Source of the DNA: Haliotis cracherodii | Lineage: Eukaryota | DNA: 64,000 nt | Assembly: GCF_022045235.1 (NCBI RefSeq) | Contig: NW_027266286.1 | Span: 68,448,001 to 68,512,000, forward strand | Reading direction: 5' to 3' | Shown: positions 1 to 64,000 of the stretch, piece by piece | How positions within the stretch are numbered: the first letter of the stretch is position 1 | Layout of the letters: each line of letters starts with the position of its first letter | Translations under genes and position numbers: made by a program | The notes under the pieces: model-generated | Told to the model about the DNA's origin: nothing | Database searches by the model: none | The model's input: only the letters and a program-made list of their open reading frames with translations

Positions 1-404
1 AACTGGGGGTCAAATCATGGGAAGTTCGAGTCAATATCATGCACACATTTTGGATCAAAACAAATTACCAACACAATACAATGTCCAATCTTGCATTTAA
101 GCTATCACAAGTCACTCCAAACATATCTGACACAGACTCAACAAGCCATTCAAACGGGGGACTATATTCTCCTATTTACCTTCCGGGTCATGGTAAAACT
201 TAGGGGACGTAACTGTGGTCTCGGGCCTAGTCTATCTTAGAGCGAATCTGCTCCTTGACCATTCATATTGCGCTGGACTCTTGAAAAAAACAGAAAACAA
301 ACCAATTGGATTTGGTTTAGAGTGGGCTTTCTCTTGAGATCGTGCCGTTGTATTGGTGGATCGCTGCTCAACTGTATAAGCTCTTAATTCTATCGGCATT
401 GCAT

Positions 405-452
405 GAGTGCATTGAGGCACGTGCCACAGTTTTATTTGGACATGCACACGGC
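405..452. promoter_or_regulatory. Candidate MRE / E-box / MRE module (repeated in each unit)
   Basis: GAGTGCA at 405-411 (TGCACTC on the minus strand), palindrome GGCACGTGCC at 416-425, TGCACACGGC at 443-452. Motif match only. Confidence 0.35.
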
Positions 453-737
453 TGTAATTATAAGCCAGGTGGACGTTTAGAGGCCATAATGATAGTACGA
501 TACTAAATGGGACTTCATGCATTTTCGGACAGAAACAGTCTACTTGCTTTGTTCAACATGTGTATAGGTTTATTGGCAGGCCTTCGAGGTTCCTAACCTT
601 GGTGGGAATGATTCCAAAGTGACAATCACTATGCAGGACACTGAAAAGTAAGTAGGGAAACTAGCTCATACAATCTTGAATTTGATTGTACTTGAAGAAA
701 ATATAACCAAAGATATATTTACAATATAAACCACAGC

Positions 738-743
738 TTTATT
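738..743 (-). terminator. Polyadenylation signal AATAAA (copy 1; repeated in each unit)
   Basis: tttatt at 738-743 on the plus strand, ~113 nt after the stop, followed on the minus strand by GT/T-rich sequence (gctgtggtttatattgtaaatatatctttggttatattttc). Confidence 0.75.
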
Positions 744-855
744 TGTACTCGTTGAGAAATAGACAGAATGAATGGATGCAGCATGGTGAGTGCAATCGAC
801 AAATATGATATCAAATGTCCAGCACTTGATGTGAATATGATGATCCTTGAATCTT

Positions 856-1460
856 TTAACCGTGGTGTCCGCCTCCATGACCACCACCTCCATGACCACC
901 TCCTCCGTGACCACCTCCTCCGTGGCCACCACCTCCGTGTCCTCCTCCTCCTCCTCCATGGCCACCACCTCCGTGTCCTCCTCCTCCTCCTCCTCCATGG
1001 CCACCACCTCCGTGTCCTCCTCCTCCTCCTCCATGGCCACCACCTCCGTGACCTCCACCACCGTGACCGCCGCCTCCGTGACCACCACCACCACCACCGT
1101 GGCCGCCTCCGCCTCCGCCTCCGTGGCCTCCGCCTCCATGGCCGCCACCACCACCACCATGGCCACCAAGGGCGGAGCCAAGGAAGACTGTGAAGAATGT
1201 TCAGAAACAACAATACATAAGTGGTCATATATGACAGGATACACACACACACACACACAAAATCCGTCCACCATTCCTGATACAGTTTAGACCATGGTAG
1301 AAACTATCCTATTCATTACGTTGTCAGCAAATCGAAAAGCCACTTAAAACTCAGCAAGAGCTAATAAAGTTGATTATTACAAAGTTTAAGATTGCGAATT
1401 CTCATCAGATAAGGCACACTTACCCAAGACTACAACAACTGCAACGTTAAGAAGGCGCAT
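856..1460 (-). CDS. Secreted Gly/His-only polypeptide precursor, copy 1 (122 aa; join 1460..1424, 1187..856)
   Basis: ATG in context acaggATG; exon 1 encodes MRLLNVAVVVVL+G; donor G|GTAAGT; acceptor ttcttcacag|TC. Splicing restores the frame to VFLGSALG-GHG6HG4HG7H...G3HHG-TAA. TATA box upstream and AATAAA downstream. Confidence 0.93.
859..1166 (-). repeat. Coding GGN/CAY trinucleotide-based minisatellite (variable length between copies)
   Basis: Contains only GGA, GGT, GGC, CAT and CAC codons in copy 1. A ~36-bp module GGA GGT GGT GGC CAT (GGA)n CAC occurs 1-3 times depending on the copy. Confidence 0.95.
1188..1423 (-). other. Phase-1 spliceosomal intron inside the signal-peptide coding region (copy 1; 230-236 bp, present in every unit)
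   Basis: Perfect GTAAGT donor at 1423-1418; pyrimidine-rich ttgttgtttctgaacattcttcacAG acceptor ending at 1188; removal joins G+TC into a Val codon in frame. Confidence 0.9.
1241..1259. repeat. Intronic (AC)n microsatellite, n about 6-9 across copies
   Basis: acacacacacacacacaca; its length change explains intron sizes of 230, 232, 234 and 236 bp. Confidence 0.9.
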
Positions 1461-1502
1461 CCTGTCAGTTACGTTGTTTATCCACGAGAGAATAAACAAT
1501 TT

Positions 1503-1537
1503 AAATGTCTCTTTTGGGATTCACACCGCCTTATATA
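1503..1537 (-). promoter_or_regulatory. Pol II core promoter: TATA box plus Inr-like start site (copy 1; repeated in each unit)
   Basis: TATATAAG at 1537-1530 on the minus strand. An Inr-like CA(+1)TTT has its A at 1506, 31 nt from the first T of the TATA box, giving a ~46-nt 5'UTR. Confidence 0.75.
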
Positions 1538-1578
1538 CATGTGGTACAGGAAATCAGGATGTTGAATGTAAATGCCCA

Positions 1579-1611
1579 CATTGGAAGATTTTAGTAAATA
1601 AAATTCCAATG
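1579..1611. promoter_or_regulatory. Inverted pair of CCAAT-containing 8-mers at about -75 and -100
   Basis: cattggaa (1579-1586) and ttccaatg (1604-1611) are exact reverse complements at typical CCAAT-box distance from the inferred start site. Confidence 0.35.
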
Positions 1612-3661
1612 AGACTTTTTACAACTTTAGAGCGTGAAGAATGAATCTCTATTTTGTAATATCACATACGACACTGCCACCTGCCTCTCTGTATTAGGCA
1701 TATCTTCCTGCATAATTATTAAATGCAAACTGTGTATTTGTGACCTAACCTGGCACCCTGTGGCTATCTCACTGCCGGGAAGCATGATAGATTTAGTGGT
1801 TCATCCAATGCAATTACAGCTACAGACCATTTTGTGAAAAACTTGAATGGAGATAGAATATTTTAAATGAAGGATAAATGCTGACCTTTAGAATTTCGTT
1901 GGGTGCAAGTACTGAGTCTACTGAGCTACCATGACTTGGAGTCAAAGGACGTTTATCAACGTATGTCAAATACGTCTTTAAAAGCAGAGGTTGTGGGAAG
2001 CTAATTATTCATCTATTCATAATCAAACTTTATGTGAAGTTGGATTTTTCAAGTGTGTGATATATTTCAAAGTTTGAATACCTGCCCGAATAATTTCAAA
2101 GTCTCATTATTTTCTACAATAAAACAGGGTGAAAGCTGATGATATACGCTCTTTGGTTTTCTGGCCTATAACACATGAATGAACACAGGGAAATCATTCC
2201 ATCCCTGCCCACATTACTTTTCAAAGGAACTCTTCCATCTAAGTTTATCTCGTGCGTATATATGTGTGTGTTTGGGAGTGTTTGGGAGAGAAAGTTCACG
2301 TCACATTTTATGCTATTTCGTAACTGGCCCAAACACTAAACAATGATGAAATGCATGAACCTTTTCTAAAGAGTGGTAAAATCTCAGCTTTCGAACACCA
2401 CATGTGGACAGGATATACTTATCCATCACACGAATACCTGATGAAACCACTATCTCCGCAGGAACATGGATGTGGTGGTAGTTTATGACAGGCACTAGGG
2501 GCTTCAACCGTCAATCTATGACCCATGTATGACCCCCTTCCTGCCAAGCATTACCCACACCCACCCACCAAGCTACAGCACCAGAGATGAACATTCATCT
2601 GGCGTCAGAGCACAATTATTCGTCATTCTTTGCTATCTACAGTGGCATGCCAATTCATACTGATTAATATCGCCCTTGCTGACTAACCTGTTACTTATCA
2701 TTTGAACAGCAAAATACCAGTCTGGGTCCACCAGCTCGACTTCCAAGTAAACGCTGTCAACAACGGTCACTGAAAGTATCGAGCCGAAACACACCCATCG
2801 GCCTTCAACTGGGGGTCAAATCATGGGAAGTTCGAGTCAATATCATGCACACATTTTGGATCAAAACAAATTACCAACACAATACAATGTCCAATCTTGC
2901 ATTTAAGCTATCACAAGTCACTCCAAACATATCTGACACAGACTCAACAAGCCATTCAAACGGGGGACTATATTCTCCTATTTACCTTCCGGGTCATGGT
3001 AAAACTTAGGGGACGTAACTGTGGTCTCGGGCCTAGTCTATCTTAGAGCGAATCTGCTCCTTGACCATTCATATTGCGCTGGACTCTTGAAAAAAACAGA
3101 AAACAAACCAATTGGATTTGGTTTAGAGTGGGCTTTCTCTTGAGATCGTGCCGTTGTATTGGTGGATCGCTGCTCAACTGTATAAGCTCTTAATTCTATC
3201 GGCATTGCATGAGTGCATTGAGGCACGTGCCACAGTTTTATTTGGACATGCACACGGCTGTAATTATAAGCCAGGTGGACGTTTAGAGGCCATAATGATA
3301 GTACGATACTAAATGGGACTTCATGCATTTTCGGACAGAAACAGTCTACTTGCTTTGTTCAACATGTGTATAGGTTTATTGGCAGGCCTTCGAGGTTCCT
3401 AACCTTGGTGGGAATGATTCCAAAGTGACAATCACTATGCAGGACACTGAAAAGTAAGTAGGGAAACTAGCTCATACAATCTTGAATTTGATTGTACTTG
3501 AAGAAAATATAACCAAAGATATATTTACAATATAAACCACAGCTTTATTTGTACTCGTTGAGAAATAGACAGAATGAATGGATGCAGCATGGTGAGTGCA
3601 ATCGACAAATATGATATCAAATGTCCAGCACTTGATGTGAATATGATGATCCTTGAATCTT

Positions 3662-4266
3662 TTAACCGTGGTGTCCGCCTCCATGACCACCACCTCCATG
3701 ACCACCTCCTCCGTGACCACCTCCTCCGTGGCCACCACCTCCGTGTCCTCCTCCTCCTCCTCCATGGCCACCACCTCCGTGTCCTCCTCCTCCTCCTCCT
3801 CCATGGCCACCACCTCCGTGTCCTCCTCCTCCTCCTCCATGGCCACCACCTCCGTGACCTCCACCACCGTGACCGCCGCCTCCGTGACCACCACCACCAC
3901 CACCGTGGCCGCCTCCGCCTCCGCCTCCGTGGCCTCCGCCTCCATGGCCGCCACCACCACCACCATGGCCACCAAGGGCGGAGCCAAGGAAGACTGTGAA
4001 GAATGTTCAGAAACAACAATACATAAGTGGTCATATATGACAGGATACACACACACACACACACAAAATCCGTCCACCATTCCTGATACAGTTTAGACCA
4101 TGGTAGAAACTATCCTATTCATTACGTTGTCAGCAAATCGAAAAGCCACTTAAAACTCAGCAAGAGCTAATAAAGTTGATTATTACAAAGTTTAAGATTG
4201 CGAATTCTCATCAGATAAGGCACACTTACCCAAGACTACAACAACTGCAACGTTAAGAAGGCGCAT
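3662..4266 (-). CDS. Gly/His polypeptide precursor, copy 2 (122 aa; join 4266..4230, 3993..3662)
   Basis: Same structure and protein as copy 1, offset 2806. Confidence 0.92.
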
Positions 4267-6467
4267 CCTGTCAGTTACGTTGTTTATCCACGAGAGAATA
4301 AACAATTTAAATGTCTCTTTTGGGATTCACACCGCCTTATATACATGTGGTACAGGAAATCAGGATGTTGAATGTAAATGCCCACATTGGAAGATTTTAG
4401 TAAATAAAATTCCAATGAGACTTTTTACAACTTTAGAGCGTGAAGAATGAATCTCTATTTTGTAATATCACATACGACACTGCCACCTGCCTCTCTGTAT
4501 TAGGCATATCTTCCTGCATAATTATTAAATGCAAACTGTGTATTTGTGACCTAACCTGGCACCCTGTGGCTATCTCACTGCCGGGAAGCATGATAGATTT
4601 AGTGGTTCATCCAATGCAATTACAGCTACAGACCGTTTTGTGAAAAACTTGAATGGAGATAGAATATTTTAAATGAAGGATAAATGCTGACCTTTAGAAT
4701 TTCGTTGGGTGCAAGTACTGAGTCTACTGAGCTACCATGACTTGGAGTCAAAGGACGTTTATCAACGTATGTCAAATACGTCTTTAAAAGCAGAGGTTGT
4801 GGGAAGCTAATTATTCATCTATTCATAATCAAACTTTATGTGAAGTTGGATTTTTCAAGTGTGTGATATATTTCAAAGTTTGAATACCTGCCCGAATAAT
4901 TTCAAAGTCTCATTATTTTCTACAATAAAACAGGGTGAAAGCTGATGATATACGCTCTTTGGTTTTCTGGCCTATAACACATGAATGAACACAGGGAAAT
5001 CATTCCATCCCTGCCCACATTACTTTTCAAAGGAACTCTTCCATCTAAGTTTATCTCGTGCGTATATATGTGTGTGTTTGGGAGTGTTTGGGAGAGAAAG
5101 TTCACGTCACATTTTATGCTATTTCGTAACTGGCCCAAACACTAAACAATGATGAAATGCATGAACCTTTTCTAAAGAGTGGTAAAATCTCAGCTTTCGA
5201 ACACCACATGTGGACAGGATATACTTATCCATCACACGAATACCTGATGAAACCACTATCTCCGCAGGAACATGGATGTGGTGGTAGTTTATGACAGGCA
5301 CTAGGGGCTTCAACCGTCAATCTATGACCCATGTATGACCCCCTTCCTGCCAAGCATTACCCACACCCACCCACCAAGCTACAGCACCAGAGATGAACAT
5401 TCATCTGGCGTCAGAGCACAATTATTCGTCATTCTTTGCTATCTACAGTGGCATGCCAATTCATACTGATTAATATCGCCCTTGCTGACTAACCTGTTAC
5501 TTATCATTTGAACAGCAAAATACCAGTCTGGGTCCACCAGCTCGACTTCCAAGTAAACGCTGTCAACAACGGTCACTGAAAGTATCGAGCCGAAACACAC
5601 CCATCGGCCTTCAACTGGGGGTCAAATCATGGGAAGTTCGAGTCAATATCATGCACACATTTTGGATCAAAACAAATTACCAACACAATACAATGTCCAA
5701 TCTTGCATTTAAGCTATCACAAGTCACTCCAAACATATCTGACACAGACTCAACAAGCCATTCAAACGGGGGACTATATTCTCCTATTTACCTTCCGGGT
5801 CATGGTAAAACTTAGGGGACGTAACTGTGGTCTCGGGCCTAGTCTATCTTAGAGCGAATCTGCTCCTTGACCATTCATATTGCGCTGGACTCTTGAAAAA
5901 AACAGAAAACAAACCAATTGGATTTGGTTTAGAGTGGGCTTTCTCTTGAGATCGTGCCGTTGTATTGGTGGATCGCTGCTCAACTGTATAAGCTCTTAAT
6001 TCTATCGGCATTGCATGAGTGCATTGAGGCACGTGCCACAGTTTTATTTGGACATGCACACGGCTGTAATTATAAGCCAGGTGGACGTTTAGAGGCCATA
6101 ATGATAGTACGATACTAAATGGGACTTCATGCATTTTCGGACAGAAACAGTCTACTTGCTTTGTTCAACATGTGTATAGGTTTATTGGCAGGCCTTCGAG
6201 GTTCCTAACCTTGGTGGGAATGATTCCAAAGTGACAATCACTATGCAGGACACTGAAAAGTAAGTAGGGAAACTAGCTCATACAATCTTGAATTTGATTG
6301 TACTTGAAGAAAATATAACCAAAGATATATTTACAATATAAACCACAGCTTTATTTGTACTCGTTGAGAAATAGACAGAATGAATGGATGCAGCATGGTG
6401 AGTGCAATCGACAAATATGATATCAAATGTCCAGCACTTGATGTGAATATGATGATCCTTGAATCTT

Positions 6468-7072
6468 TTAACCGTGGTGTCCGCCTCCATGACCACCACC
6501 TCCATGACCACCTCCTCCGTGACCACCTCCTCCGTGGCCACCACCTCCGTGTCCTCCTCCTCCTCCTCCATGGCCACCACCTCCGTGTCCTCCTCCTCCT
6601 CCTCCTCCATGGCCACCACCTCCGTGTCCTCCTCCTCCTCCTCCATGGCCACCACCTCCGTGACCTCCACCACCGTGACCGCCGCCTCCGTGACCACCAC
6701 CACCACCACCGTGGCCGCCTCCGCCTCCGCCTCCGTGGCCTCCGCCTCCATGGCCGCCACCACCACCACCATGGCCACCAAGGGCGGAGCCAAGGAAGAC
6801 TGTGAAGAATGTTCAGAAACAACAATACATAAGTGGTCATATATGACAGGATACACACACACACACACACAAAATCCGTCCACCATTCCTGATACAGTTT
6901 AGACCATGGTAGAAACTATCCTATTCATTACGTTGTCAGCAAATCGAAAAGCCACTTAAAACTCAGCAAGAGCTAATAAAGTTGATTATTACAAAGTTTA
7001 AGATTGCGAATTCTCATCAGATAAGGCACACTTACCCAAGACTACAACAACTGCAACGTTAAGAAGGCGCAT
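6468..7072 (-). CDS. Gly/His polypeptide precursor, copy 3 (122 aa; join 7072..7036, 6799..6468)
   Basis: Same structure and protein as copy 1. Confidence 0.92.
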
Positions 7073-9273
7073 CCTGTCAGTTACGTTGTTTATCCACGAG
7101 AGAATAAACAATTTAAATGTCTCTTTTGGGATTCACACCGCCTTATATACATGTGGTACAGGAAATCAGGATGTTGAATGTAAATGCCCACATTGGAAGA
7201 TTTTAGTAAATAAAATTCCAATGAGACTTTTTACAACTTTAGAGCGTGAAGAATGAATCTCTATTTTGTAATATCACATACGACACTGCCACCTGCCTCT
7301 CTGTATTAGGCATATCTTCCTGCATAATTATTAAATGCAAACTGTGTATTTGTGACCTAACCTGGCACCCTGTGGCTATCTCACTGCCGGGAAGCATGAT
7401 AGATTTAGTGGTTCATCCAATGCAATTACAGCTACAGACCGTTTTGTGAAAAACTTGAATGGAGATAGAATATTTTAAATGAAGGATAAATGCTGACCTT
7501 TAGAATTTCGTTGGGTGCAAGTACTGAGTCTACTGAGCTACCATGACTTGGAGTCAAAGGACGTTTATCAACGTATGTCAAATACGTCTTTAAAAGCAGA
7601 GGTTGTGGGAAGCTAATTATTCATCTATTCATAATCAAACTTTATGTGAAGTTGGATTTTTCAAGTGTGTGATATATTTCAAAGTTTGAATACCTGCCCG
7701 AATAATTTCAAAGTCTCATTATTTTCTACAATAAAACAGGGTGAAAGCTGATGATATACGCTCTTTGGTTTTCTGGCCTATAACACATGAATGAACACAG
7801 GGAAATCATTCCATCCCTGCCCACATTACTTTTCAAAGGAACTCTTCCATCTAAGTTTATCTCGTGCGTATATATGTGTGTGTTTGGGAGTGTTTGGGAG
7901 AGAAAGTTCACGTCACATTTTATGCTATTTCGTAACTGGCCCAAACACTAAACAATGATGAAATGCATGAACCTTTTCTAAAGAGTGGTAAAATCTCAGC
8001 TTTCGAACACCACATGTGGACAGGATATACTTATCCATCACACGAATACCTGATGAAACCACTATCTCCGCAGGAACATGGATGTGGTGGTAGTTTATGA
8101 CAGGCACTAGGGGCTTCAACCGTCAATCTATGACCCATGTATGACCCCCTTCCTGCCAAGCATTACCCACACCCACCCACCAAGCTACAGCACCAGAGAT
8201 GAACATTCATCTGGCGTCAGAGCACAATTATTCGTCATTCTTTGCTATCTACAGTGGCATGCCAATTCATACTGATTAATATCGCCCTTGCTGACTAACC
8301 TGTTACTTATCATTTGAACAGCAAAATACCAGTCTGGGTCCACCAGCTCGACTTCCAAGTAAACGCTGTCAACAACGGTCACTGAAAGTATCGAGCCGAA
8401 ACACACCCATCGGCCTTCAACTGGGGGTCAAATCATGGGAAGTTCGAGTCAATATCATGCACACATTTTGGATCAAAACAAATTACCAACACAATACAAT
8501 GTCCAATCTTGCATTTAAGCTATCACAAGTCACTCCAAACATATCTGACACAGACTCAACAAGCCATTCAAACGGGGGACTATATTCTCCTATTTACCTT
8601 CCGGGTCATGGTAAAACTTAGGGGACGTAACTGTGGTCTCGGGCCTAGTCTATCTTAGAGCGAATCTGCTCCTTGACCATTCATATTGCGCTGGACTCTT
8701 GAAAAAAACAGAAAACAAACCAATTGGATTTGGTTTAGAGTGGGCTTTCTCTTGAGATCGTGCCGTTGTATTGGTGGATCGCTGCTCAACTGTATAAGCT
8801 CTTAATTCTATCGGCATTGCATGAGTGCATTGAGGCACGTGCCACAGTTTTATTTGGACATGCACACGGCTGTAATTATAAGCCAGGTGGACGTTTAGAG
8901 GCCATAATGATAGTACGATACTAAATGGGACTTCATGCATTTTCGGACAGAAACAGTCTACTTGCTTTGTTCAACATGTGTATAGGTTTATTGGCAGGCC
9001 TTCGAGGTTCCTAACCTTGGTGGGAATGATTCCAAAGTGACAATCACTATGCAGGACACTGAAAAGTAAGTAGGGAAACTAGCTCATACAATCTTGAATT
9101 TGATTGTACTTGAAGAAAATATAACCAAAGATATATTTACAATATAAACCACAGCTTTATTTGTACTCGTTGAGAAATAGACAGAATGAATGGATGCAGC
9201 ATGGTGAGTGCAATCGACAAATATGATATCAAATGTCCAGCACTTGATGTGAATATGATGATCCTTGAATCTT

Positions 9274-9874
9274 TTAACCGTGGTGTCCGCCTCCATGACC
9301 ACCACCTCCATGACCACCTCCTCCGTGACCACCTCCTCCGTGGCCACCACCTCCGTGTCCTCCTCCTCCTCCTCCATGGCCACCACCTCCGTGTCCTCCT
9401 CCTCCTCCTCCTCCATGGCCACCACCTCCGTGTCCTCCTCCTCCTCCTCCATGGCCACCACCTCCGTGACCTCCACCACCGTGACCGCCGCCTCCGTGAC
9501 CACCACCACCACCACCGTGGCCGCCTCCGCCTCCGCCTCCGTGGCCTCCGCCTCCATGGCCGCCACCACCACCACCATGGCCACCAAGGGCGGAGCCAAG
9601 GAAGACTGTGAAGAATGTTCAGAAACAACAATACATAAGTGGTCATATATGACAGGATACACACACACACACAAAATCCGTCCACCATTCCTGATACAGT
9701 TTAGACCATGGTAGAAACTATCCTATTCATTACGTTGTCAGCAAATCGAAAAGCCACTTAAAACTCAGCAAGAGCTAATAAAGTTGATTATTACAAAGTT
9801 TAAGATTGCGAATTCTCATCAGATAAGGCACACTTACCCAAGACTACAACAACTGCAACGTTAAGAAGGCGCAT
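9274..9874 (-). CDS. Gly/His polypeptide precursor, copy 4 (122 aa; join 9874..9838, 9605..9274)
   Basis: Same protein as copy 1; intron is 232 bp because of a shorter CA repeat. Confidence 0.92.
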
Positions 9875-12075
9875 CCTGTCAGTTACGTTGTTTATCCACG
9901 AGAGAATAAACAATTTAAATGTCTCTTTTGGGATTCACACCGCCTTATATACATGTGGTACAGGAAATCAGGATGTTGAATGTAAATGCCCACATTGGAA
10001 GATTTTAGTAAATAAAATTCCAATGAGACTTTTTACAACTTTAGAGCGTGAAGAATGAATCTCTATTTTGTAATATCACATACGACACTGCCACCTGCCT
10101 CTCTGTATTAGGCATATCTTCCTGCATAATTATTAAATGCAAACTGTGTATTTGTGACCTAACCTGGCACCCTGTGGCTATCTCACTGCCGGGAAGCATG
10201 ATAGATTTAGTGGTTCATCCAATGCAATTACAGCTACAGACCGTTTTGTGAAAAACTTGAATGGAGATAGAATATTTTAAATGAAGGATAAATGCTGACC
10301 TTTAGAATTTCGTTGGGTGCAAGTACTGAGTCTACTGAGCTACCATGACTTGGAGTCAAAGGACGTTTATCAACGTATGTCAAATACGTCTTTAAAAGCA
10401 GAGGTTGTGGGAAGCTAATTATTCATCTATTCATAATCAAACTTTATGTGAAGTTGGATTTTTCAAGTGTGTGATATATTTCAAAGTTTGAATACCTGCC
10501 CGAATAATTTCAAAGTCTCATTATTTTCTACAATAAAACAGGGTGAAAGCTGATGATATACGCTCTTTGGTTTTCTGGCCTATAACACATGAATGAACAC
10601 AGGGAAATCATTCCATCCCTGCCCACATTACTTTTCAAAGGAACTCTTCCATCTAAGTTTATCTCGTGCGTATATATGTGTGTGTTTGGGAGTGTTTGGG
10701 AGAGAAAGTTCACGTCACATTTTATGCTATTTCGTAACTGGCCCAAACACTAAACAATGATGAAATGCATGAACCTTTTCTAAAGAGTGGTCAAATCTCA
10801 GCTTTCGAACACCACATGTGGACAGGATATACTTATCCATCACACGAATACCTGATGAAACCACTATCTCCGCAGGAACATGGATGTGGTGGTAGTTTAT
10901 GACAGGCACTAGGGGCTTCAACCGTCAATCTATGACCCATGTATGACCCCCTTCCTGCCAAGCATTACCCACACCCACCCACCAAGCTACAGCACCAGAG
11001 ATGAACATTCATCTGGCGTCAGAGCACAATTATTCGTCATTCTTTGCTATCTACAGTGGCATGCCAATTCATACTGATTAATATCGCCCTTGCTGACTAA
11101 CCTGTTACTTATCATTTGAACAGCAAAATACCAGTCTGGGTCCACCAGCTCGACTTCCAAGTAAACGCTGTCAACAACGGTCACTGAAAGTATCGAGCCG
11201 AAACACACCCATCGGCCTTCAACTGGGGGTCAAATCATGGGAAGTTCGAGTCAATATCATGCACACATTTTGGATCAAAACAAATTACCAACACAATACA
11301 ATGTCCAATCTTGCATTTAAGCTATCACAAGTCACTCCAAACATATCTGACACAGACTCAACAAGCCATTCAAACGGGGGACTATATTCTCCTATTTACC
11401 TTCCGGGTCATGGTAAAACTTAGGGGACGTAACTGTGGTCTCGGGCCTAGTCTATCTTAGAGCGAATCTGCTCCTTGACCATTCATATTGCGCTGGACTC
11501 TTGAAAAAAACAGAAAACAAACCAATTGGATTTGGTTTAGAGTGGGCTTTCTCTTGAGATCGTGCCGTTGTATTGGTGGATCGCTGCTCAACTGTATAAG
11601 CTCTTAATTCTATCGGCATTGCATGAGTGCATTGAGGCACGTGCCACAGTTTTATTTGGACATGCACACGGCTGTAATTATAAGCCAGGTGGACGTTTAG
11701 AGGCCATAATGATAGTACGATACTAAATGGGACTTCATGCATTTTCGGACAGAAACAGTCTACTTGCTTTGTTCAACATGTGTATAGGTTTATTGGCAGG
11801 CCTTCGAGGTTCCTAACCTTGGTGGGAATGATTCCAAAGTGACAATCACTATGCAGGACACTGAAAAGTAAGTAGGGAAACTAGCTCATACAATCTTGAA
11901 TTTGATTGTACTTGAAGAAAATATAACCAAAGATATATTTACAATATAAACCACAGCTTTATTTGTACTCGTTGAGAAATAGACAGAATGAATGGATGCA
12001 GCATGGTGAGTGCAATCGACAAATATGATATCAAATGTCCAGCACTTGATGTGAATATGATGATCCTTGAATCTT

Positions 12076-53922: not shown

Positions 53923-54448
53923 TTAACCGTGGTGTCCGCCTCCATGACCACCACCTCCATGACCACCTCCTCCGTGACCACCTCCTCCGTGGCCACCACC
54001 TCCGTGTCCTCCTCCTCCTCCTCCATGGCCACCACCTCCGTGACCTCCACCACCGTGACCGCCGCCTCCGTGACCACCACCACCACCACCGTGGCCGCCT
54101 CCGCCTCCACCACCGTGGCCTCCGCCTCCATGGCCGGCACCACCACCACCATGGCCACCAAGGGCGGAGCCAAGGAAGACTGTGAAGAATGTACAGAAAC
54201 AACAATACATAAGTGGTCATATATGACAGGATACACACACACACACAAAATCCGTCCACCATTCCTGATACAGTTTAGACTATGGTAGAAACTATCCTAT
54301 TCATTACGTTGTCAGCAAATCGAAAAGCCACTTAAAACTCAGCAAGAGCTAATAAAGTTGATTATTACAAAGTTTAAGATTGCGAATTCTCATCAGATAA
54401 GGCACACTTACCCAAGACTACAACAACTGCAACGTTAAGAAGGCGCAT
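53923..54448 (-). CDS. Gly/His polypeptide precursor, copy 20 (97 aa, one Gly>Ala; join 54448..54412, 54179..53923)
   Basis: Intact; shortest form, with only one of the three internal modules. Confidence 0.9.
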
Positions 54449-56649
54449 CCTGTCAGTTACGTTGTTTATCCACGAGAGAATAAACAATTTAAATGTCTCT
54501 TTTGGGATTCACACCGCCTTATATACATGTGGTACAGGAGATCAGGATGTTGAATGTAAATGCCCACATTGGAAGATTTTAGTAAATAAAATTCCAATGA
54601 GACTTTTTACAACTTTAGAGCGTGAAGAAGGAATCTCTATTTTGTAATATCACATGGGACAGTGTCACCTGCCTCTCTGTATTAGGCATATCTTCCTGCA
54701 TAATTATTAAATGCAAACTGTGTATTTGTGACCTAACCTGGCACCCTGTGGCTATCTCACTGCCGGGAAGCATGATAGATTTAGTGGTTCATCCAATGCA
54801 ATTACAGCTACAGACCGTTTTGTGAAAAACTTGAATGGAGATAGAATATTTTAAATGAAGCATAAATGCTGACCTTTAGAATTTCGTTGGGTGCAAGTAC
54901 TGAGTCTACTGAGCTACCATGACTTGGAGTCAAAGGACGTTTATCAACGTATGTCAAATACGTCTTTAAAAGCAGAGGTTGTGGGAAGCTAATTATTCAT
55001 CTATTCATAATCAAACTTTATGTGAAGTTGGATTTTTCAAGTGTGTGATATATTTCAAAGTTTGAATACCTGCCCGAATAATTTCAAAGTCTCATTATTT
55101 TCTACAATAAAACAGGGTGAAAGCTGATGATATACGCTCTTTGGTTTTCTGGCCTATAACACACGAATGAACACAGGGAAATCATTCCATCCCTGCCCAC
55201 ATTACTTTTCAAAGGAACTCTTCCATCTAAGTTTATCTCGTGTGTGTATATGTGTGTGTTTGGGAGTGTTTGGGAGAGAAAGTTCACGTCACATTTTATG
55301 CTATTTCGTAACTGGCCCAAACACTAAACAATGATGAAATGCATGAACATTTTCTAAAGAGTGGTAAAATCTCAGCTTTCGAACACCACATGTGGACAGG
55401 ATATACTTATCCATCACACGAATACCTGATGAAACCACTATCTCCGCAGGAACATGGATGTGGTGGTAGTTTATGACAGGCACTAGGGGCTTCAACCGTC
55501 AATCTATGACCCATGTATGACCCCCTTCCTGCCAAGCATTACCCACACCCACCCACCAAGCTACAGCACCAGAGATGAACATTCATCTGGCGTCAGAGCA
55601 CAATTATTCGTCATTCTTTGCTATCTACAGTGGCATGCCAATTCATACTGATTAATATCGCCCTTGCTGACTAACCTGTTACTTATCATTTGAACAGCAA
55701 AATACCAGTCTGGGTCCACCAGCTCGACTTCCAAGTAAACGCTGTCAACAACGGTCACTGAAAGTATCGAGCCGAAACACACCCATCGGCCTTCAACTGG
55801 GGGTCAAATCATGGGAAGTTCGAGTCAATATCATGCACACATTTTGGATCAAAACAAATTACCAACACAATACAATGTCCAATCTTGCATTTAAGCTATC
55901 ACAAGTCACTCCAAACATATCTGACACAGACTCAACAAGCCATTCAAAGGGGGGACTATGTTCTCCTATTTACCTTCCGGGTCATGGTAAAACTTAGGGG
56001 ACGTAACTGTGGTCTCGGGCCTAGTCTATCTTAGAGCGAATCTGCTCCTTGACCATTCATATTGCGCTGGACTCTTGAAAAAAACAGAAAACAAACCAAT
56101 TGGATTTGGTTTAGAGTGGGCTTCCTCTTGAGATCGTGCCGTTGTATTGGTGGATCGCTGCTCAACTGTATAAGCTCTTAATTCTATCGGCATTGCATGA
56201 GTGCATTGAGGCACGTGCCACAGTTTTATTTGGACATGCACACGGCTGTAATTATAAGCCAGGTGGACGTTTAGAGGCCATAATGATAGTACGATACTAA
56301 ATGGGACTTCATGCATTTTCGGACAGAAACAGTCTACTTGCTTTGTTCAACATGTGTATAGGTTTATTGGCAGGCCTTCGAGGTTCCTAACCTTGGTGGG
56401 AATGATTCCAAAGTGACAATCACTATGCAGGACACTGAAAAGTAAGTAGGGAAACTAGCTCATACAATCTTGAATTTGATTGTACTTGAAGAAAATATAA
56501 CCAAAGATATATTTACAATATAAACCACAGCTTTATTTGTACTCGTTGAGAAATAGACAGAATGAATGGATGCAGCATGGTGAGTGTAATCGACAAATAT
56601 GATATCAAATGTCCAGCACTTGATGTGAATATGATGATCCTTGAATCTT

Positions 56650-57175
56650 TTAACCGTGGTGTCCGCCTCCATGACCACCACCTCCATGACCACCTCCTCC
56701 GTGACCACCTCCTCCGTGGCCACCACCTCCGTGTCCTCCTCCTCCTCCTCCATGGCCACCACCTCCGTGACCTCCACCACCGTGACCGCCGCCTCCGTGA
56801 CCACCACCACCACCACCGTGGCCGCCTCCGCCTCCACCACCGTGGCCTCCGCCTCCATGGCCGGCACCACCACCACCATGGCCACCAAGGGCGGAGCCAA
56901 GGAAGACTGTGAAGAATGTACAGAAACAACAATACATAAGTGGTCATATATGACAGGATACACACACACACACAAAATCCGTCCACCATTCCTGATACAG
57001 TTTAGACTATGGTAGAAACTATCCTATTCATTACGTTGTCAGCAAATCGAAAAGCCACTTAAAACTCAGCAAGAGCTAATAAAGTTGATTATTACAAAGT
57101 TTAAGATTGCGAATTCTCATCAGATAAGGCACACTTACCCAAGACTACAACAACTGCAACGTTAAGAAGGCGCAT
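56650..57175 (-). CDS. Gly/His polypeptide precursor, copy 21 (97 aa; join 57175..57139, 56906..56650)
   Basis: Same protein as copy 20. Confidence 0.9.
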
Positions 57176-59376
57176 CCTGTCAGTTACGTTGTTTATCCAC
57201 GAGAGAATAAACAATTTAAATGTCTCTTTTGGGATTCACACCGCCTTATATACATGTGGTACAGGAGATCAGGATGTTGAATGTAAATGCCCACATTGGA
57301 AGATTTTAGTAAATAAAATTCCAATGAGACTTTTTACAACTTTAGAGCGTGAAGAAGGAATCTCTATTTTGTAATATCACATGGGACAGTGTCACCTGCC
57401 TCTCTGTATTAGGCATATCTTCCTGCATAATTATTAAATGCAAACTGTGTATTTGTGACCTAACCTGGCACCCTGTGGCTATCTCACTGCCGGGAAGCAT
57501 GATAGATTTAGTGGTTCATCCAATGCAATTACAGCTACAGACCGTTTTGTGAAAAACTTGAATGGAGATAGAATATTTTAAATGAAGCATAAATGCTGAC
57601 CTTTAGAATTTCGTTGGGTGCAAGTACTGAGTCTACTGAGCTACCATGACTTGGAGTCAAAGGACGTTTATCAACGTATGTCAAATACGTCTTTAAAAGC
57701 AGAGGTTGTGGGAAGCTAATTATTCATCTATTCATAATCAAACTTTATGTGAAGTTGGATTTTTCAAGTGTGTGATATATTTCAAAGTTTGAATACCTGC
57801 CCGAATAATTTCAAAGTCTCATTATTTTCTACAATAAAACAGGGTGAAAGCTGATGATATACGCTCTTTGGTTTTCTGGCCTATAACACACGAATGAACA
57901 CAGGGAAATCATTCCATCCCTGCCCACATTACTTTTCAAAGGAACTCTTCCATCTAAGTTTATCTCGTGTGTGTATATGTGTGTGTTTGGGAGTGTTTGG
58001 GAGAGAAAGTTCACGTCACATTTTATGCTATTTCGTAACTGGCCCAAACACTAAACAATGATGAAATGCATGAACATTTTCTAAAGAGTGGTAAAATCTC
58101 AGCTTTCGAACACCACATGTGGACAGGATATACTTATCCATCACACGAATACCTGATGAAACCACTATCTCCGCAGGAACATGGATGTGGTGGTAGTTTA
58201 TGACAGGCACTAGGGGCTTCAACCGTCAATCTATGACCCATGTATGACCCCCTTCCTGCCAAGCATTACCCACACCCACCCACCAAGCTACAGCACCAGA
58301 GATGAACATTCATCTGGCGTCAGAGCACAATTATTCGTCATTCTTTGCTATCTACAGTGGCATGCCAATTCATACTGATTAATATCGCCCTTGCTGACTA
58401 ACCTGTTACTTATCATTTGAACAGCAAAATACCAGTCTGGGTCCACCAGCTCGACTTCCAAGTAAACGCTGTCAACAACGGTCACTGAAAGTATCGAGCC
58501 GAAACACACCCATCGGCCTTCAACTGGGGGTCAAATCATGGGAAGTTCGAGTCAATATCATGCACACATTTTGGATCAAAACAAATTACCAACACAATAC
58601 AATGTCCAATCTTGCATTTAAGCTATCACAAGTCACTCCAAACATATCTGACACAGACTCAACAAGCCATTCAAACGGGGGACTATATTCTCCTATTTAC
58701 CTTCCGGGTCATGGTAAAACTTAGGGGACGTAACTGTGGTCTCGGGCCTAGTCTATCTTAGAGCGAATCTGCTCCTTGACCATTCATATTGCGCTGGACT
58801 CTTGAAAAAAACAGAAAACAAACCAATTGGATTTGGTTTAGAGTGGGCTTTCTCTTGAGATCGTGCCGTTGTATTGGTGGATCGCTGCTCAACTGTATAA
58901 GCTCTTAATTCTATCGGCATTGCATGAGTGCATTGAGGCACGTGCCACAGTTTTATTTGGACATGCACACGGCTGTAATTATAAGCCAGGTGGACGTTTA
59001 GAGGCCATAATGATAGTACGATACTAAATGGGACTTCATGCATTTTCGGACAGAAACAGTCTACTTGCTTTGTTCAACATGTGTATAGGTTTATTGGCAG
59101 GCCTTCGAGGTTCCTAACCTTGGTGGGAATGATTCCAAAGTGACAATCACTATGCAGGACACTGAAAAGTAAGTAGGGAAACTAGCTCATACAATCTTGA
59201 ATTTGATTGTACTTGAAGAAAATATAACCAAAGATATATTTACAATATAAACCACAGCTTTATTTGTACTCGTTGAGAAATAGACAGAATGAATGGATGC
59301 AGCATGGTGAGTGCAATCGACAAATATAATATCAAATGTCCAGCACTTGATGTGAATATGATGATCCTTGAATCTT

Positions 59377-59986
59377 TTAACCGTGGTGTCCGCCTCCATG
59401 ACCACCACCTCCATGACCACCTCCTCCGTGACCACCTCCTCCGTGGCCAAAACCTCCGTGTCCTCCTCCTCCTCCTCCTCCTCCATGGCCACCACCTCCG
59501 TGTCCTCCTCCTCCTCCTCCATGGCCACCACCTCCGTGTCCTCCTCCTCCTCCTCCATGGCCACCACCTCCGTGACCTCCACCACCGTGACCGCCGCCTC
59601 CGTGACCACCACCACCACCACCGTGGCCGCCTCCGCCTCCGCCCCCGCCTCCGTGGCCTCCGCCTCCATGGCCGCCACCACCACCACCATGGCCACCAAG
59701 GGCGGAGCCAAGGAAGACTGTGAAGAATGTACAGAAACAACAATACATAAGTGGTCATATATGACAGGATACACACACACACACAAAATCCGTCCACCAT
59801 TCCTGATACAGTTTAGACTATGGTAGAAACTATCCTATTCATTACGTTGTCAGCAAATCGAAAAGCCACTTAAAACTCAGCAAGAGCTAATAAAGTTGAT
59901 TATTACAAAGTTGAAGATTGCGAATTCTCATCAGATAAGGCACACTTACCCAAGACTACAGCAACTGCAACGTTAAGAAGGCGCAT
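59377..59986 (-). CDS. Gly/His polypeptide precursor, copy 22 (125 aa, V9A and one Gly>Phe; join 59986..59950, 59717..59377)
   Basis: Intact; GTT>GCT in exon 1, and GGT>TTT giving GGFGH. Confidence 0.9.
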
Positions 59987-62187
59987 CCTGTCAGTTACGT
60001 TGTTTATCCACGAGAGAATAAACAATTTAAATGTCTCTTTTGGGATTCACACCGCCTTATATACATGTGGTACAGGAAATCAGGATGTTGAATGTAAATG
60101 CCCACATTGGAAGATTTTAGTAAATAAAATTCCAATGAGACTTTTTACAACTTTAGAGCGTGAAGAATGAATCTCTATTTTGTAATATCACATACGACAC
60201 TGCCACCTGCCTCTCTGTATTAGGCATATCTTCCTGCATAATTATTAAATGCAAACTGTGTATTTGTGACCTAACCTGGCACCCTGTGGCTATCTCACTG
60301 CCGGGAAGCATGATAGATTTAGTGGTTCATCCAATGCAATTACAGCTACAGACCGTTTTGTGAAAAACTTGAATGGAGATAGAATATTTTAAATGAAGGA
60401 TAAATGCTGACCTTTAGAATTTCGTTGGGTGCAAGTACTGAGTCTACTGAGCTACCATGACTTGGAGTCAAAGGACGTTTATCAACGTATGTCAAATACG
60501 TCTTTAAAAGCAGAGGTTGTGGGAAGCTAATTATTCATCTATTCATAATCAAACTTTATGTGAAGTTGGATTTTTCAAGTGTGTGATATATTTCAAAGTT
60601 TGAATACCTACCCGAATAATTTCAAAGTCTCATTATTTTCTACAATAAAACAGGGTGAAAGCTGATGATATACGCTCTTTGGTTTTCTGGCCTATAACAC
60701 ACGAATGAACACAGGGAAATCATTCCATCCCTGCCCACATTACTTTTCAAAGGAACTCTTCCATCTAAGTTTATCTCGTGTGTGTATATGTGTGTGTTTG
60801 GGAGTGTTTGGGAGAGAAAGTTCACGTCACATTTTATGCTATTTCGTAACTGGCCCAAACACTAAACAATGATGAAATGCATGAACATTTTCTAAAGAGT
60901 GGTAAAATCACAGCTTTCGAACACCACATGTGGACAGGATATACTTATCCATCACACGAATACCTGATGAAACCACTATCTCCGCAGGAACATGGATGTG
61001 GTGGTAGTTTATGACAGGCACTAGGGGCTTCAACCGTCAATCTATGACCCATGTATGACCCCCTTCCTGCCAAGCATTACCCACACCCACCCACCAAGCT
61101 ACAGCACCAGAGATGAACATTCATCTGGCGTCAGAGCACAATTATTCGTCATTCTTTGCTATCTACAGTGGCATGCCAATTCATACTGATTAATATCGCC
61201 CTTGCTGACTAACCTGTTACTTATCATTTGAACAGCAAAATACCAGTCTGGGTCCACCAGCTCGACTTCCAAGTAAACGCTGTCAACAACGGTCACTGAA
61301 AGTATCGAGCCGAAACACACCCATCGGCCTTCAACTGGGGGTCAAATCATGGGAAGTTCGAGTCAATATCATGCACACATTTTGGATCAAAACAAATTAC
61401 CAACACAATACAATGTCCAATCTTGCATTTAAGCTATCACAAGTCACTCCAAACATATCTGACACAGACTCAACAAGCCATTCAAACGGGGGACTATATT
61501 CTCCTATTTACCTTCCGGGTCATGGTAAAACTTAGGGGACGTAACTGTGGTCTCGGGCCTAGTCTATCTTAGAGCGAATCTGCTCCTTGACCATTCATAT
61601 TGCGCTGGACTCTTGAAAAAAACAGAAAACAAACCAATTGGATTTGGTTTAGAGTGGGCTTTCTCTTGAGATCGTGCCGTTGTATTGGTGGATCGCTGCT
61701 CAACTGTATAAGCTCTTAATTCTATCGGCATTGCATGAGTGCATTGAGGCACGTGCCACAGTTTTATTTGGACATGCACACGGCTGTAATTATAAGCCAG
61801 GTGGACGTTTAGAGGCCATAATGATAGTACGATACTAAATGGGACTTCATGCATTTTCGGACAGAAACAGTCTACTTGCTTTGTTCAACATGTGTATAGG
61901 TTTATTGGCAGGCCTTCGAGGTTCCTAACCTTGGTGGGAATGATTCCAAAGTGACAATCACTATGCAGGACACTGAAAAGTAAGTAGGGAAACTAGCTCA
62001 TACAATCTTGAATTTGATTGTACTTGAAGAAAATATAACCAAAGATATATTTACAATATAAACCACAGCTTTATTTGTACTCGTTGAGAAATAGACAGAA
62101 TGAATGGATGCAGCATGGTGAGTGCAATCGACAAATATGATATCAAATGTCCAGCACTTGATGTGAATATGATGATCCTTGAATCTT

Positions 62188-62782
62188 TTAACCGTGGTGT
62201 CCGCCTCCATGACCACCACCTCCATGACCACCTCCTCCGTGACCACCTCCTCCGTGGCCACCACCTCCGTGTCCTCCTCCTCCTCCTCCATGGCCACCAC
62301 CTCCGTGTCCTCCTCCTCCTCCATGGCCACCACCTCCGTGTCCTCCTCCTCCTCCTCCATGGCCACCACCTCCGTGACCTCCACCACCGTGACCGCCGCC
62401 TCCGTGACCACCTCCACCACCACCGTGGCCGCCTCCGCCTCCGCCTCCGTGGCCTCCGCCTCCATGGCCGCCACCACCACCACCATGGCCACCAAGGGCG
62501 GAGCCAAGGAAGACTGTGAAGAATGTACAGAAACAACAATACATAAGTGGTCATATATGACAGGATACACACACACACACAAAATCCGTCCACCATTCCT
62601 GATACAGTTTAGACCATGGTAGAAACTATCCTATTCATTACGTTGTCAGCAAATCGAAAAGCCACTTAAAACTCAGCAAGAGCTAATAAAGTTGATTATT
62701 ACAAAGTTGAAGATTGCGAATTCTCATCAGATAAGGCACACTTACCCAAGACTACAACAACTGCAACGTTAAGAAGGCGCAT
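62188..62782 (-). CDS. Gly/His polypeptide precursor, copy 23 (120 aa; join 62782..62746, 62513..62188)
   Basis: Start, splice sites and stop are intact. Confidence 0.9.
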
Positions 62783-64000
62783 CCTGTCAGTTACGTTGTT
62801 TATCCACGAGAGAATAAACAATTTAAATGTCTCTTTTGGGATTCACACCGCCTTATATACATGTGGTACAGGAAATCAGGATGTTGAATATAAATGCCCA
62901 CATTGGAAGATTTTAGTAAATAAAATTCCAATGAGACTTTTTACAACTTTAGAGCGTGAAGAATGAATCTCTATTTTGTAATATCACATACGACACTGCC
63001 ACCTGCCTCTCTGTATTAGGCATATCTTCCTGCATAATTATTAAATGCAAACTGTGTATTTGTGACCTAACCTGGCACCCTGTGGCTATCTCACTGCCGG
63101 GAAGCATGATAGATTTAGTGGTTCATCCAATGCAATTACAGCTACAGACCGTTTTGTGAAAAACTTGAATGGAGATAGAATATTTTAAATGAAGGATAAA
63201 TGCTGACCTTTAGAATTTCGTTGGGTGCAAGTACTGAGTCTACTGAGCTACCATGACTTGGAGTCAAAGGACGTTTATCAACGTATGTCAAATACGTCTT
63301 TAAAAGCAGAGGTTGTGGGAAGCTAATTATTCATCTATTCATAATCAAACTTTATGTGAAGTTGGATTTTTCAAGTGTGTGATATATTTCAAAGTTTGAA
63401 TACCTGCCCGAATAATTTCAAAGTCTCATTATTTTCTACAATAAAACAGGGTGAAAGCTGATGATATACGCTCTTTGGTTTTCTGGCCTATAACACACGA
63501 ATGAACACAGGGAAATCATTCCATCCCTGCCCACATTACTTTTCAAAGGAACTCTTCCATCTAAGTTTATCTCGTGTGTGTATATGTGTGTGTTTGGGAG
63601 TGTTTGGGAGAGAAAGTTCACGTCACATTTTATGCTATTTCGTAACTGGCCCAAACACTAAACAATGATGAAATGCATGAACATTTTCTAAAGAGTGGTA
63701 AAATCTCAGCTTTCGAACACCACATGTGGACAGGATATATTTATCCATCACACGAATACCTGATGAAACCACTATCTCCGCAGGAACATGGATGTGGTGG
63801 TAGTTTATGACAGGCACTAGGGGCTTCAACCGTCAATCTATGACCCATGTATGAACCCCTTCCTGCCAAGCATTACCCACACCCACCCACCAAGCTACAG
63901 CACCAGAGATGAACATTCATCTGGCGTCAGAGCACAATTATTCGTCATTCTTTGCTATCTACAGTGGCATGCCAATTCATACTGATTAATATCGCCCTTG

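Follow-up and report, generated by a model that had tools for sequence, protein, structure and literature searches.

We report that the window (the whole stretch of 64,000 nucleotides of abalone DNA analysed here) lies within a tandem array of a two-exon gene, which in the assembly comprises 48 head-to-tail copies over ~135.5 kb of a chromosome (C23:68439948-68575419) and whose predicted product is a secreted chain composed almost entirely of glycine and histidine. The array of ~2.8-kb units is real, bounded and homogenised, and both its ends and the anatomy of its genes are established. On our reading as a whole, which we hold with moderate confidence, this real array would provide bulk dosage of a polymer switched by pH and metal, for which a role in defence or metal sequestration is placed slightly above a structural one.

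Counted by start codons with a full gene body, there are 23 complete copies in the window, all on the minus strand and spaced 2,727-2,811 bp apart, with partial spacer at each side of the 23 genes (window edges 1 and 64000). At least 23 tandem copies had been anticipated in the original prediction, as had an array that crosses both window edges, and the array indeed continues with 3 further copies on the left and 22 on the right. Orientation is minus in 48/48 copies and each copy carries the complete set of gene signals, an arrangement of head-to-tail, one-orientation units that bears out the likeness to rDNA or histone arrays drawn at the outset. Across the 48-copy array, spacing stays at 2,727-2,811 bp save for one interval of 4,101 bp, owing to an internal duplication. 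Both array borders run into unique flanks without gaps or N. Reading frames are intact in 47/48 copies of the whole array and, as predicted, in 22/23 of those in the window, the sole broken copy (ATG at 37825) having one in-frame TGA. Coding sequence lengths are multiples of 3 in 48/48 copies and fall into 13 length classes, and the products comprise 25 protein variants of 97-125 aa.

The proposal that each ~2.8-kb unit contains the whole gene held for every unit: all 23 in the window run from a TATA box through a 37-nt exon 1, a GTAAGT donor, an intron, exon 2 and a TAA stop to an AATAAA. The features of a representative copy, followed by all gene copies in the window (coordinates from TATA box to AATAAA), are:

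1529..1537, minus strand: TATA box TATATAAGG, as read from sequence only; ~70-80 nt upstream of the ATG; in 23/23 units
1424..1460, minus strand: exon 1 coding part, 37 nt from the ATG (12 codons + 1 nt of the signal peptide), followed by the GTAAGT donor
1188..1423, minus strand: predicted intron, 230-236 nt across units, with (GT)n microsatellite, polypyrimidine tract and CAG acceptor
856..1187, minus strand: exon 2 coding part, with the end of the signal peptide (..FLGSALG), the Gly/His copolymer to HHG, and TAA
738..743, minus strand: AATAAA polyadenylation signal; the high-depth contig of run X15 stops at 734
738..1537, minus strand: gene copy 1, 122 aa, intact
3544..4343, minus strand: gene copy 2, 122 aa, intact
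6350..7149, minus strand: gene copy 3, 122 aa, intact
9156..9951, minus strand: gene copy 4, 122 aa, intact
11958..12757, minus strand: gene copy 5, 122 aa, intact
14751..15530, minus strand: gene copy 6, 116 aa, intact
17537..18334, minus strand: gene copy 7, 122 aa, intact
20341..21135, minus strand: gene copy 8, 121 aa, intact
23142..23936, minus strand: gene copy 9, 121 aa, intact
25943..26742, minus strand: gene copy 10, 122 aa, intact; Gly-to-Ser in the signal peptide
28731..29528, minus strand: gene copy 11, 122 aa, intact
31537..32339, minus strand: gene copy 12, 123 aa, intact
34348..35104, minus strand: gene copy 13, 109 aa, intact
37110..37902, minus strand: gene copy 14, ATG at 37825; a single in-frame TGA, otherwise full length
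37423..37425, minus strand: nonsense codon of copy 14, TGA in place of the Gly codon of other copies
39911..40673, minus strand: gene copy 15, 111 aa, intact
42690..43449, minus strand: gene copy 16, 110 aa, intact; one Gly-to-Arg
45466..46226, minus strand: gene copy 17, 111 aa, intact
48243..48999, minus strand: gene copy 18, 109 aa, intact
51006..51798, minus strand: gene copy 19, 121 aa, intact
53805..54525, minus strand: gene copy 20, short isoform of 97 aa in a 2,727-bp unit, intact
56532..57252, minus strand: gene copy 21, short isoform of 97 aa in a 2,727-bp unit, intact
59259..60063, minus strand: gene copy 22, 125 aa, intact; signal peptide with Val-to-Ala, repeat with one Phe
62070..62859, minus strand: gene copy 23, 120 aa, intact

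Pairwise identity among the 22 complete units of the window was 99.0-100% (mean 99.5%). Nucleotide diversity was low throughout the unit (exon 1, 0.1%; intron, 0.7%; coding part of exon 2, 0.5%; spacer, 0.5-1.0%), so that the description of spacer, intron and exons as equally homogeneous is roughly right. Length variation resides mainly in the coding repeat, the (GT)n run of the intron and one stretch of the spacer. Divergence grows with distance along the array, from 0.31% at lag 1 to 0.99% at lags 32-47 (Spearman 0.42), similar neighbours form ordered blocks, and the edge copies are the most diverged (identity to the reference unit: 91% for the leftmost, 96-98% for the rightmost). Units of the array differ from one another by ~0.7% on average and from a sister array on contig C16 by ~20% over the whole unit; therefore, whole units are under concerted evolution, with unequal crossing-over or gene conversion acting locally, in agreement with the mode of upkeep first proposed.

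Arrays of 99.5% identity are difficult to assemble and one 7.8-kb block is perfectly periodic, as would be expected if the assembler had inflated a few real copies to 48. We regard such an over-expansion as very improbable: an assembler would not create the 25 distinct proteins, the 13 coding lengths, the many unit lengths and the ordered blocks of neighbours, the array is joined to unique sequence at both borders, and the longest perfectly periodic block (7,844 bp) is shorter than half the HiFi read N50 of 15,971 bp (PMC9709981).

The sister array on contig C16 holds 16 copies of a 3.1-kb unit, with products of 124-139 aa, and its unit is homologous to the one described here from end to end, spacer included (77-83%). 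The two arrays have the promoter block, the two-exon plan and the HHG end in common and differ in the splice donor (GTACGT in the sister array vs GTAAGT); their first exons, which encode the signal peptide, are identical save for one synonymous base. Despite the ~20% DNA divergence, the sole residues other than Gly and His in the sister products are 2-3 Lys. Two further arrays, on contigs C30 and C15, encode Gly/His/Lys products with the same two-exon plan and a GHHG end, but this branch has another signal peptide and many Lys, its DNA is without similarity to our unit, and some of its copies are frameshifted. A relic copy that has escaped from the array is 88% identical and contains 2 stops and ~14 foreign residues. 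Variable sites within the array (14 nonsynonymous, 8 synonymous) are near neutral by count; nonsynonymous variants are mostly singletons, and synonymous ones have spread further (Mann-Whitney p = 0.009). As read from these sequences, selection evidently maintains the Gly/His frame.

An array of this kind might also be a largely silent macrosatellite, built by unequal exchange without selection for dosage, in which few or none of the copies are transcribed and the frames look intact only because both expansion and homogenisation are recent. In favour of such a history stand a spacer no less homogeneous than the exons and the near-neutral count of variable sites. CpG observed/expected is 0.58 in the array vs 0.73-0.77 in the flanks, which could mean germline methylation, and 0 of the sampled sequence words of the unit occurred in three runs that are from the same species and labelled as RNA. 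Nevertheless, we consider a silent array unlikely: the C16 products retain the Gly/His frame at ~20% DNA divergence while the escaped relic has decayed, the signal-peptide exon is all but unchanged between the two arrays, the whole unit has been kept in other species, and in two runs the 3' exon is far deeper than the spacer. These two runs, X15 and X18, come from related species and have Logan contig depths of 498 and 232 in the 3' exon vs 6.9 and 3.5 in the spacer, a 30-70-fold excess in runs only guessed to be RNA; runs X16 and X17, whose RNA label is likewise a guess, have a flat, DNA-like depth across the unit. No exon 1-exon 2 splice joint was seen in the contigs of the related-species runs. 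Comparison with related species, suggested along with the original prediction, found the unit beyond its source species, its sequence words occurring under six organism labels in 12 studies; the unit is conserved in other species. Dosage amplification is plausible but only partly supported, and the depth of the 3' exon no more than suggests very high output.

The predicted product begins with a signal peptide split over exons 1 and 2, in agreement with the secretion originally proposed, and continues as a predicted mature chain of 77-105 residues (~7 kDa; 81% Gly, 19% His). This chain is built of H(G)4-7 repeats, with Gly runs of 4-8 and His mostly every 5 or 7 residues (range 5-8); it starts with Gly-His and ends with His-His-Gly, and other residues make up less than 0.4%. 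The one product first supposed is in fact a set of 25 length variants. Structure prediction gave no confident fold (pLDDT 50, pTM 0.10), and the mature chain is predicted to be intrinsically disordered. Its predicted net charge is -0.7 at pH 8.1, +9.3 at pH 6 and +17.2 at pH 5. No homologue was matched among 5.8 billion proteins, the ESM Atlas and PDB sequences, nor by a HMMER scan of 1.84 billion representatives, and the product matched 0 Pfam families above the curated threshold; all of these are tests that composition-bias filters weaken. Two scanned units gave 0 Rfam matches, and we found no publication on a Gly/His product of such an array.

We propose that copy amplification is a matter of dosage and allows the product to be made in bulk, within a limited tissue or period. 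Because it carries 19 imidazoles, the chain would be a polycation with a charge of +9 to +17 in the acidic secretory granule, and it would be almost uncharged at the pH of seawater. On release, it would lose its charge, bind Zn(II) or Cu(II) via its spaced histidines and condense. As to function, we rank host defence or the sequestering of metal, in mucus or in haemolymph, slightly above that of a metal-cross-linked structural material.

More tentatively, the homogenised abalone genes, more than 60 and perhaps ~120 in number, may constitute an undescribed class of genetically templated polyelectrolytes of two (Gly/His) or three (Gly/His/Lys) letters that act as a pH- and metal-switched material or in metal handling in secretions. 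Such a class would be hidden from gene finders because of its low complexity and 37-nt first exon, from searches for homologues because these filter by composition, and from tryptic proteomics because the Gly/His chains are free of Lys and Arg; all three standard routes would probably miss genes of this class. If expression is what the structure of the array suggests, abalones set aside 135 kb at this locus, with further sequence at others, for a chain of almost pure Gly/His, which is among the simplest natural protein polymers known. Gly/His chains currently attract attention as materials that bind metals, undergo phase separation or act against microbes (shepherin, Glycera jaw protein), and a His-rich peptide secreted in bulk could matter for adhesion, the handling of metals or the defence of mucosal surfaces in an abalone that is critically endangered and hit by disease. 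The two sister arrays, the decayed relic and the ordered variants also offer a clean natural system for the concerted evolution of protein-coding genes.

With the array and gene as described, the product could instead be structural: secreted in bulk, the chains would be linked through Zn or Cu coordination into a material that is hard or adhesive, for example that of jaw, radula, periostracum or pedal glue. To this possibility we give appreciable but clearly lesser weight. In composition, the chain is nearest to the Glycera jaw protein MTP (49% Gly, 40% His) and to Nereis Nvjp-1, secreted proteins of marine invertebrates which, like the abalone chain, are dominated by Gly and His and which function through Cu or Zn coordination and condensation triggered by pH or metal, MTP undergoing Cu-induced phase separation and Nvjp-1 a pH-dependent transition (PMC9999432, PMC9465683). 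More than 64 near-identical genes and a Gly/His/Lys branch would suit a bulk material, and the switch in charge between pH 5 and 8.1 is the trigger of such materials. [quoted passage not shown] A paper on the abalone shell proteome mentions nothing like the Gly/His chain, though tryptic proteomics would miss it because it is without Lys or Arg.

For the defence or metal-sequestering role that we prefer, Gly/His antimicrobial peptides offer the parallel, in that the abalone chain is, by prediction, likewise secreted and dominated by short Gly/His repeats, a likeness of composition; sequence searches gave no homology to shepherin, holotricin 3 or tenecin 3. All of these functional analogies are drawn from composition and not from homology. 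The shepherins I and II of Capsella bursa-pastoris are cut out of a longer precursor. Shepherin I is almost pure Gly/His (67.9% Gly, 28.6% His, in GGH repeats), and its binding of Zn(II) leads to fibrils and antifungal activity (PMC10698721). Unlike the abalone chain, it comes from a plant and has 28 residues, with His at every third residue vs every 5-8 and no common descent.

The insect antifungals holotricin 3, tenecin 3 and Sarcophaga AFP are also secreted and Gly/His-rich, and we know of no large homogenised arrays of insect holotricin-type genes. Holotricin 3 is close in size (84 aa vs 77-105 aa for the abalone mature chain) and has HGGG repeats with GGHHGG near its C-terminus (PMC5715947), but it also contains Tyr, Pro, Asn, Gln, Arg, Ser and Phe and has no detectable homology to the abalone chain.

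In genomic organisation, the parallel is with fish antifreeze genes, of which one starry flounder allele has 33 in twelve nearly identical 11.2-kb repeats and the other allele 4, and ocean pout up to ~150 (PMC9122973). Unequal crossing-over makes those arrays grow and shrink, and their copy number is read as dosage; in abalone, the copy number is that of the assembly, and a link to output would be putative. The antifreeze peptides are Ala-rich helices from a different phylum, in contrast to a disordered Gly/His chain, and the abalone units, at 2.8 kb, are shorter and hold a single gene; common to both are near-identical tandem units with a small gene whose product is a low-complexity peptide destined for secretion.

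Tandem Repeats Finder revealed that a 36-nt coding repeat comes back approximately every 2.8 kb in the window, and k-mer autocorrelation of the same DNA gave maxima at 2,727-2,811 bp. Each unit carries one two-exon gene, with the following elements read from the sequence (coordinates are those of a representative copy in the window):

TATA box TATATAAGG, minus strand, first of these elements in reading order
Exon 1 (1424-1460), minus strand, ATG with 37 nt of hydrophobic coding sequence, then a GTAAGT donor
Intron (1188-1423), minus strand, 230-236 nt with a (GT)n run, a polypyrimidine tract and a CAG acceptor
Exon 2 (coding part 856-1187), minus strand, a long stretch of GGN and CAY codons, then a TAA stop
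AATAAA (738-743), minus strand, ~115 nt beyond the TAA stop

The start-codon context occurred 23 times in the window, on the minus strand every time, and in-silico splicing of the 23 copies gave an open frame of 97-125 codons in 22 of them, the remaining one being truncated by a single in-frame TGA (window 37423-37425). Comparison of the 22 complete ATG-to-ATG units gave identities of 99.0-100% (mean 99.5%), and the window is free of any N. These values agree with the original prediction of at least 23 near-identical copies, with 22 of 23 frames intact. An Rfam search with two units returned 0 matches, so the spacer showed no RNA gene belonging to any curated Rfam family. The introns fall into length classes of 230, 232, 234, and 236 nt, set by the (GT)n microsatellite (e.g., 1188-1423), and these classes mark blocks of neighboring units. 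At window 53805-57252, two adjoining 2,727-bp units encode an identical 97-aa short isoform with a Gly-to-Ala change and carry a common promoter-block variant; this pair looks like a recent local duplication within the array.

The ends of the array were sought in 110 kb of flanking DNA on C23, the contig that holds the window (genome: 1,182,234,246 bases in 80 contigs). We found 48 occurrences of the exon 1 motif from C23:68441043 to 68573606, all 48 on the minus strand; besides those in the window, 3 lie on its left side and 22 on its right, which matches the earlier expectation that the array runs past both window edges. Since homology to the unit stops on both sides (C23:68439948 and 68575419), the array, which spans ~135.5 kb, ends inside the assembly. 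Intact genes were present in 47 of the 48 copies, which together encode 25 distinct proteins. The sole unusual spacing, 4,101 bp (C23:68566724-68570824, outside the window), is due to duplication of ~1.3 kb of spacer within the unit. A transposon as the cause of this spacing was ruled out by that internal duplication, and no LINE or transposon insertion was found when these were looked for across the 48 units.

Two stray pieces of the unit lie beyond the right end of the array:

C23:68586167-68587499, outside the window and ~11 kb right of the array, relic partial unit with exon 2, 3'UTR and part of the spacer at 88-92% identity
C23:68711855-68712231, plus strand (opposite to the array), orphan 377-bp piece ~136 kb beyond the right end

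The relic lacks the promoter and exon 1. The orphan piece consists of the promoter, exon 1 and the first 118 nt of the intron (97-99% identity to the unit), and no exon 2 is nearby. We also scanned the flanks for ORFs of at least 110 codons, with no family search, which returned one ORF that is ankyrin-like by eye, reverse-transcriptase fragments and one minisatellite; among ORFs of this size, nothing had an apparent functional link to the array. A minisatellite with ~30-nt units, open in several frames, occupies C23:68580005-68580858 in the right flank, between the array end and the relic. Outside the window on the minus strand, two copies of one ORF, 7.6 kb apart (C23:68592390-68592719 and 68600013-68600342), begin like a signal peptide (MRPLLLVVFA..) and continue as a low-complexity chain rich in Asp and Lys; they possibly encode one more secreted charged peptide in the vicinity of the array.

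Quantification of variation among the 48 copies revealed nucleotide diversity of 0.1-1.2% in all parts of the unit, indicating that homogenization acts on whole units and not on the coding part alone. Copies farther apart were more diverged, with 0.31% between neighbors and 0.99% at separations of at least 32 units (Spearman 0.42), and the most diverged copies were those at the array edges. This dependence on distance is the pattern expected of local unequal exchange or gene conversion. Related genes were present at further loci in the same genome:

C16:4974902-5021576, sister array of 16 copies in 3.1-kb units, with a GTACGT donor
C30:2860-12104 and 417893, and C15:14104083-14104337 at a contig end, a Gly/His/Lys branch

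The sister array on contig C16 encodes products of 124-139 aa with 2-3 Lys in GKG motifs. It has in common with the C23 array a 30-nt promoter block, the two-exon plan and exon 1 (one synonymous base apart), and its unit is homologous to the C23 unit over the full length, including the spacer, at 77-83% identity. Identity of 99.3% inside the array versus ~80% between the arrays is textbook concerted evolution. The genes on C30 and C15 follow the same plan and encode shorter Gly/His/Lys chains with a GHHG end and a different signal peptide; this branch is without DNA similarity to the C23 unit, and two of the four copies read were visibly broken by a frameshift.

The Pfam family Egg_lysin (abalone sperm lysin) scored above its cut-off in the present genome and in 0 of 14 control genomes, in line with an abalone source. 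The black abalone primary assembly was built with hifiasm from 37x PacBio HiFi data with a read N50 of 15,971 bp (PMC9709981). Perfect periodicity extends over no more than 7,844 bp anywhere in the array, roughly half the length of a typical HiFi read, and therefore each HiFi read should span variants that distinguish copies. This limit, along with the ordered way in which the copies vary, would argue against over-expansion of the array by the assembler. The observed/expected CpG ratio was 0.58 in the array and 0.73-0.77 in the flanks, and the lower array value may hint at germline methylation.

Several observations point to the Gly/His frame as the product of the gene. The signal peptide begun in exon 1 is carried on in this frame only, where the hydrophobic core ends in ..FLGSALG, with Ala at -3 and Gly at -1, followed by GH. 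Coding lengths were multiples of three in 48 of 48 copies, in 13 length classes, and the C16 genes are, apart from their 2-3 Lys, pure Gly/His at ~20% DNA divergence. The relic, at 88% identity, has 2 stops and ~14 foreign residues in ~115 codons of this frame. This copy shows, from within the same genome, what neutral decay looks like, and makes a useful neutral reference for the array. Among the array copies, nonsynonymous variants were nearly all singletons while synonymous ones occurred at higher copy counts (Mann-Whitney p = 0.009), although the simple count of 14 nonsynonymous versus 8 synonymous sites is near neutral and speaks against this reading. ORFs read in alternative frames of the repeat were rejected as products, because the Gly/His frame alone connects to the signal-peptide exon and is preserved in the paralogues. 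Counting of Gly codons in all exon 2 coding parts (e.g., 856-1187) gave 1,660 GGA, 1,418 GGT, 741 GGC, and 1 GGG (total 3,820), and the G-rich coding strand therefore rarely has more than two consecutive G; the scarcity of GGG may be due simply to repeat ancestry, or to selection that disfavors slippage or G-quadruplexes.

Expression was assessed in assembled contigs from sequencing runs, in which the sequence words of the gene were present under six organism labels in 12 studies, at fractions of 0.82-0.93 for the same species and 0.32-0.69 for the other labels. Contigs from four runs of related species (X15-X18) were aligned to window 300-3000. In X16 and X17, contig depth was flat and low over gene and spacer, so that these runs look like DNA; they show roughly 95% conservation of the whole unit, including the spacer that connects one gene's 3' flank with the promoter of the following gene. 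In X15 and X18, whose RNA label is a guess, the contig that covers the final part of the coding sequence together with the 3'UTR (734 or 775 to 903) had depths of 498 and 232, compared to 15 and 30 for the intron-bearing contig and 6.9 and 3.5 for the spacer. The X15 contig stops at 734, just beyond AATAAA. These high-depth contigs matched the C23 3'UTR at 98% and 96%, and the C16 array at only 90.6%, although their repeat carries a Lys codon motif. With the RNA label being guessed, this depth pattern is what strong transcription of an orthologous array would look like. Yet no exon 1-exon 2 joint was reported among the contigs of X15-X18, and the words of the gene were absent from three RNA-labeled runs of the same species. 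Taking the 3' depth excess together with the guessed label, the lack of a joint and the three empty runs, we consider expression likely, and tissue-restricted, but unproven.

The commonest predicted mature chain, 101 residues long, consists of 82 Gly and 19 His (7.3 kDa; calculated pI 7.5), starts with Gly-His, ends with His-His-Gly, and is without Cys, aromatics or fixed charges. Spacing from His to His is mostly 5 residues (471 cases) or 7 (194 cases). AlphaFold2 gave no fold and no secondary structure (pLDDT 50; pTM 0.10). Predicted net charge is -0.7 at pH 8.1, +9.3 at pH 6 and +17.2 at pH 5. In an acidic secretory compartment the chain would thus be a soluble polycation, and in seawater it would lose its charge, which could free the imidazoles for Zn(II) or Cu(II) binding and lead to condensation. 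Comparable behavior has been observed experimentally for shepherin I, which forms antifungal fibrils induced by Zn (PMC10698721), for Nvjp-1, a random coil at pH 5 that becomes beta-rich at the pH of seawater and that Zn hardens (PMC9999432, PMC9465683), and for Glycera MTP, which phase-separates upon Cu binding (PMC9999432). The nearest described molecule in size and repeat type is holotricin 3, a beetle antifungal protein of 84 residues that contains HGGG repeats and, close to its C-terminus, GGHHGG (PMC5715947), and because of this nearness we would rank a defense or metal-sequestering role slightly above a structural one. The likeness to all four is compositional, with no detectable homology.

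Protein searches were queried with the exon 2 translation, while exon 1 (12 codons), being too short a query for protein searches, was searched as a DNA pattern in the abalone's own genome. The exon 2 translation had no match in a word search of 5.8 billion proteins, in Pfam, in the ESM Atlas, in PDB sequences or among 1.84 billion representatives scanned in full with HMMER. Because true relatives are probably lost to composition-bias correction, these empty searches say little. Searches of an open-access library turned up no account of a Gly/His polymer from abalones or other molluscs, and the apparent novelty of the combination set out below rests in part on this and on the lack of a match in the searched collections.

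Secreted Gly/His-rich proteins are already known, as are homogenized arrays for small secreted low-complexity peptides. The closest case of such arrays is that of the fish antifreeze genes, in which twelve near-identical 11.2-kb repeats have been described, with 33 versus 4 genes between two alleles, and ocean pout has up to ~150 antifreeze genes (PMC9122973). Compared to these systems, novelty appears to lie in the combination of a mollusc host, an almost pure two-letter chain, 48 plus 16 genes with one signal peptide, and a Lys-bearing branch.
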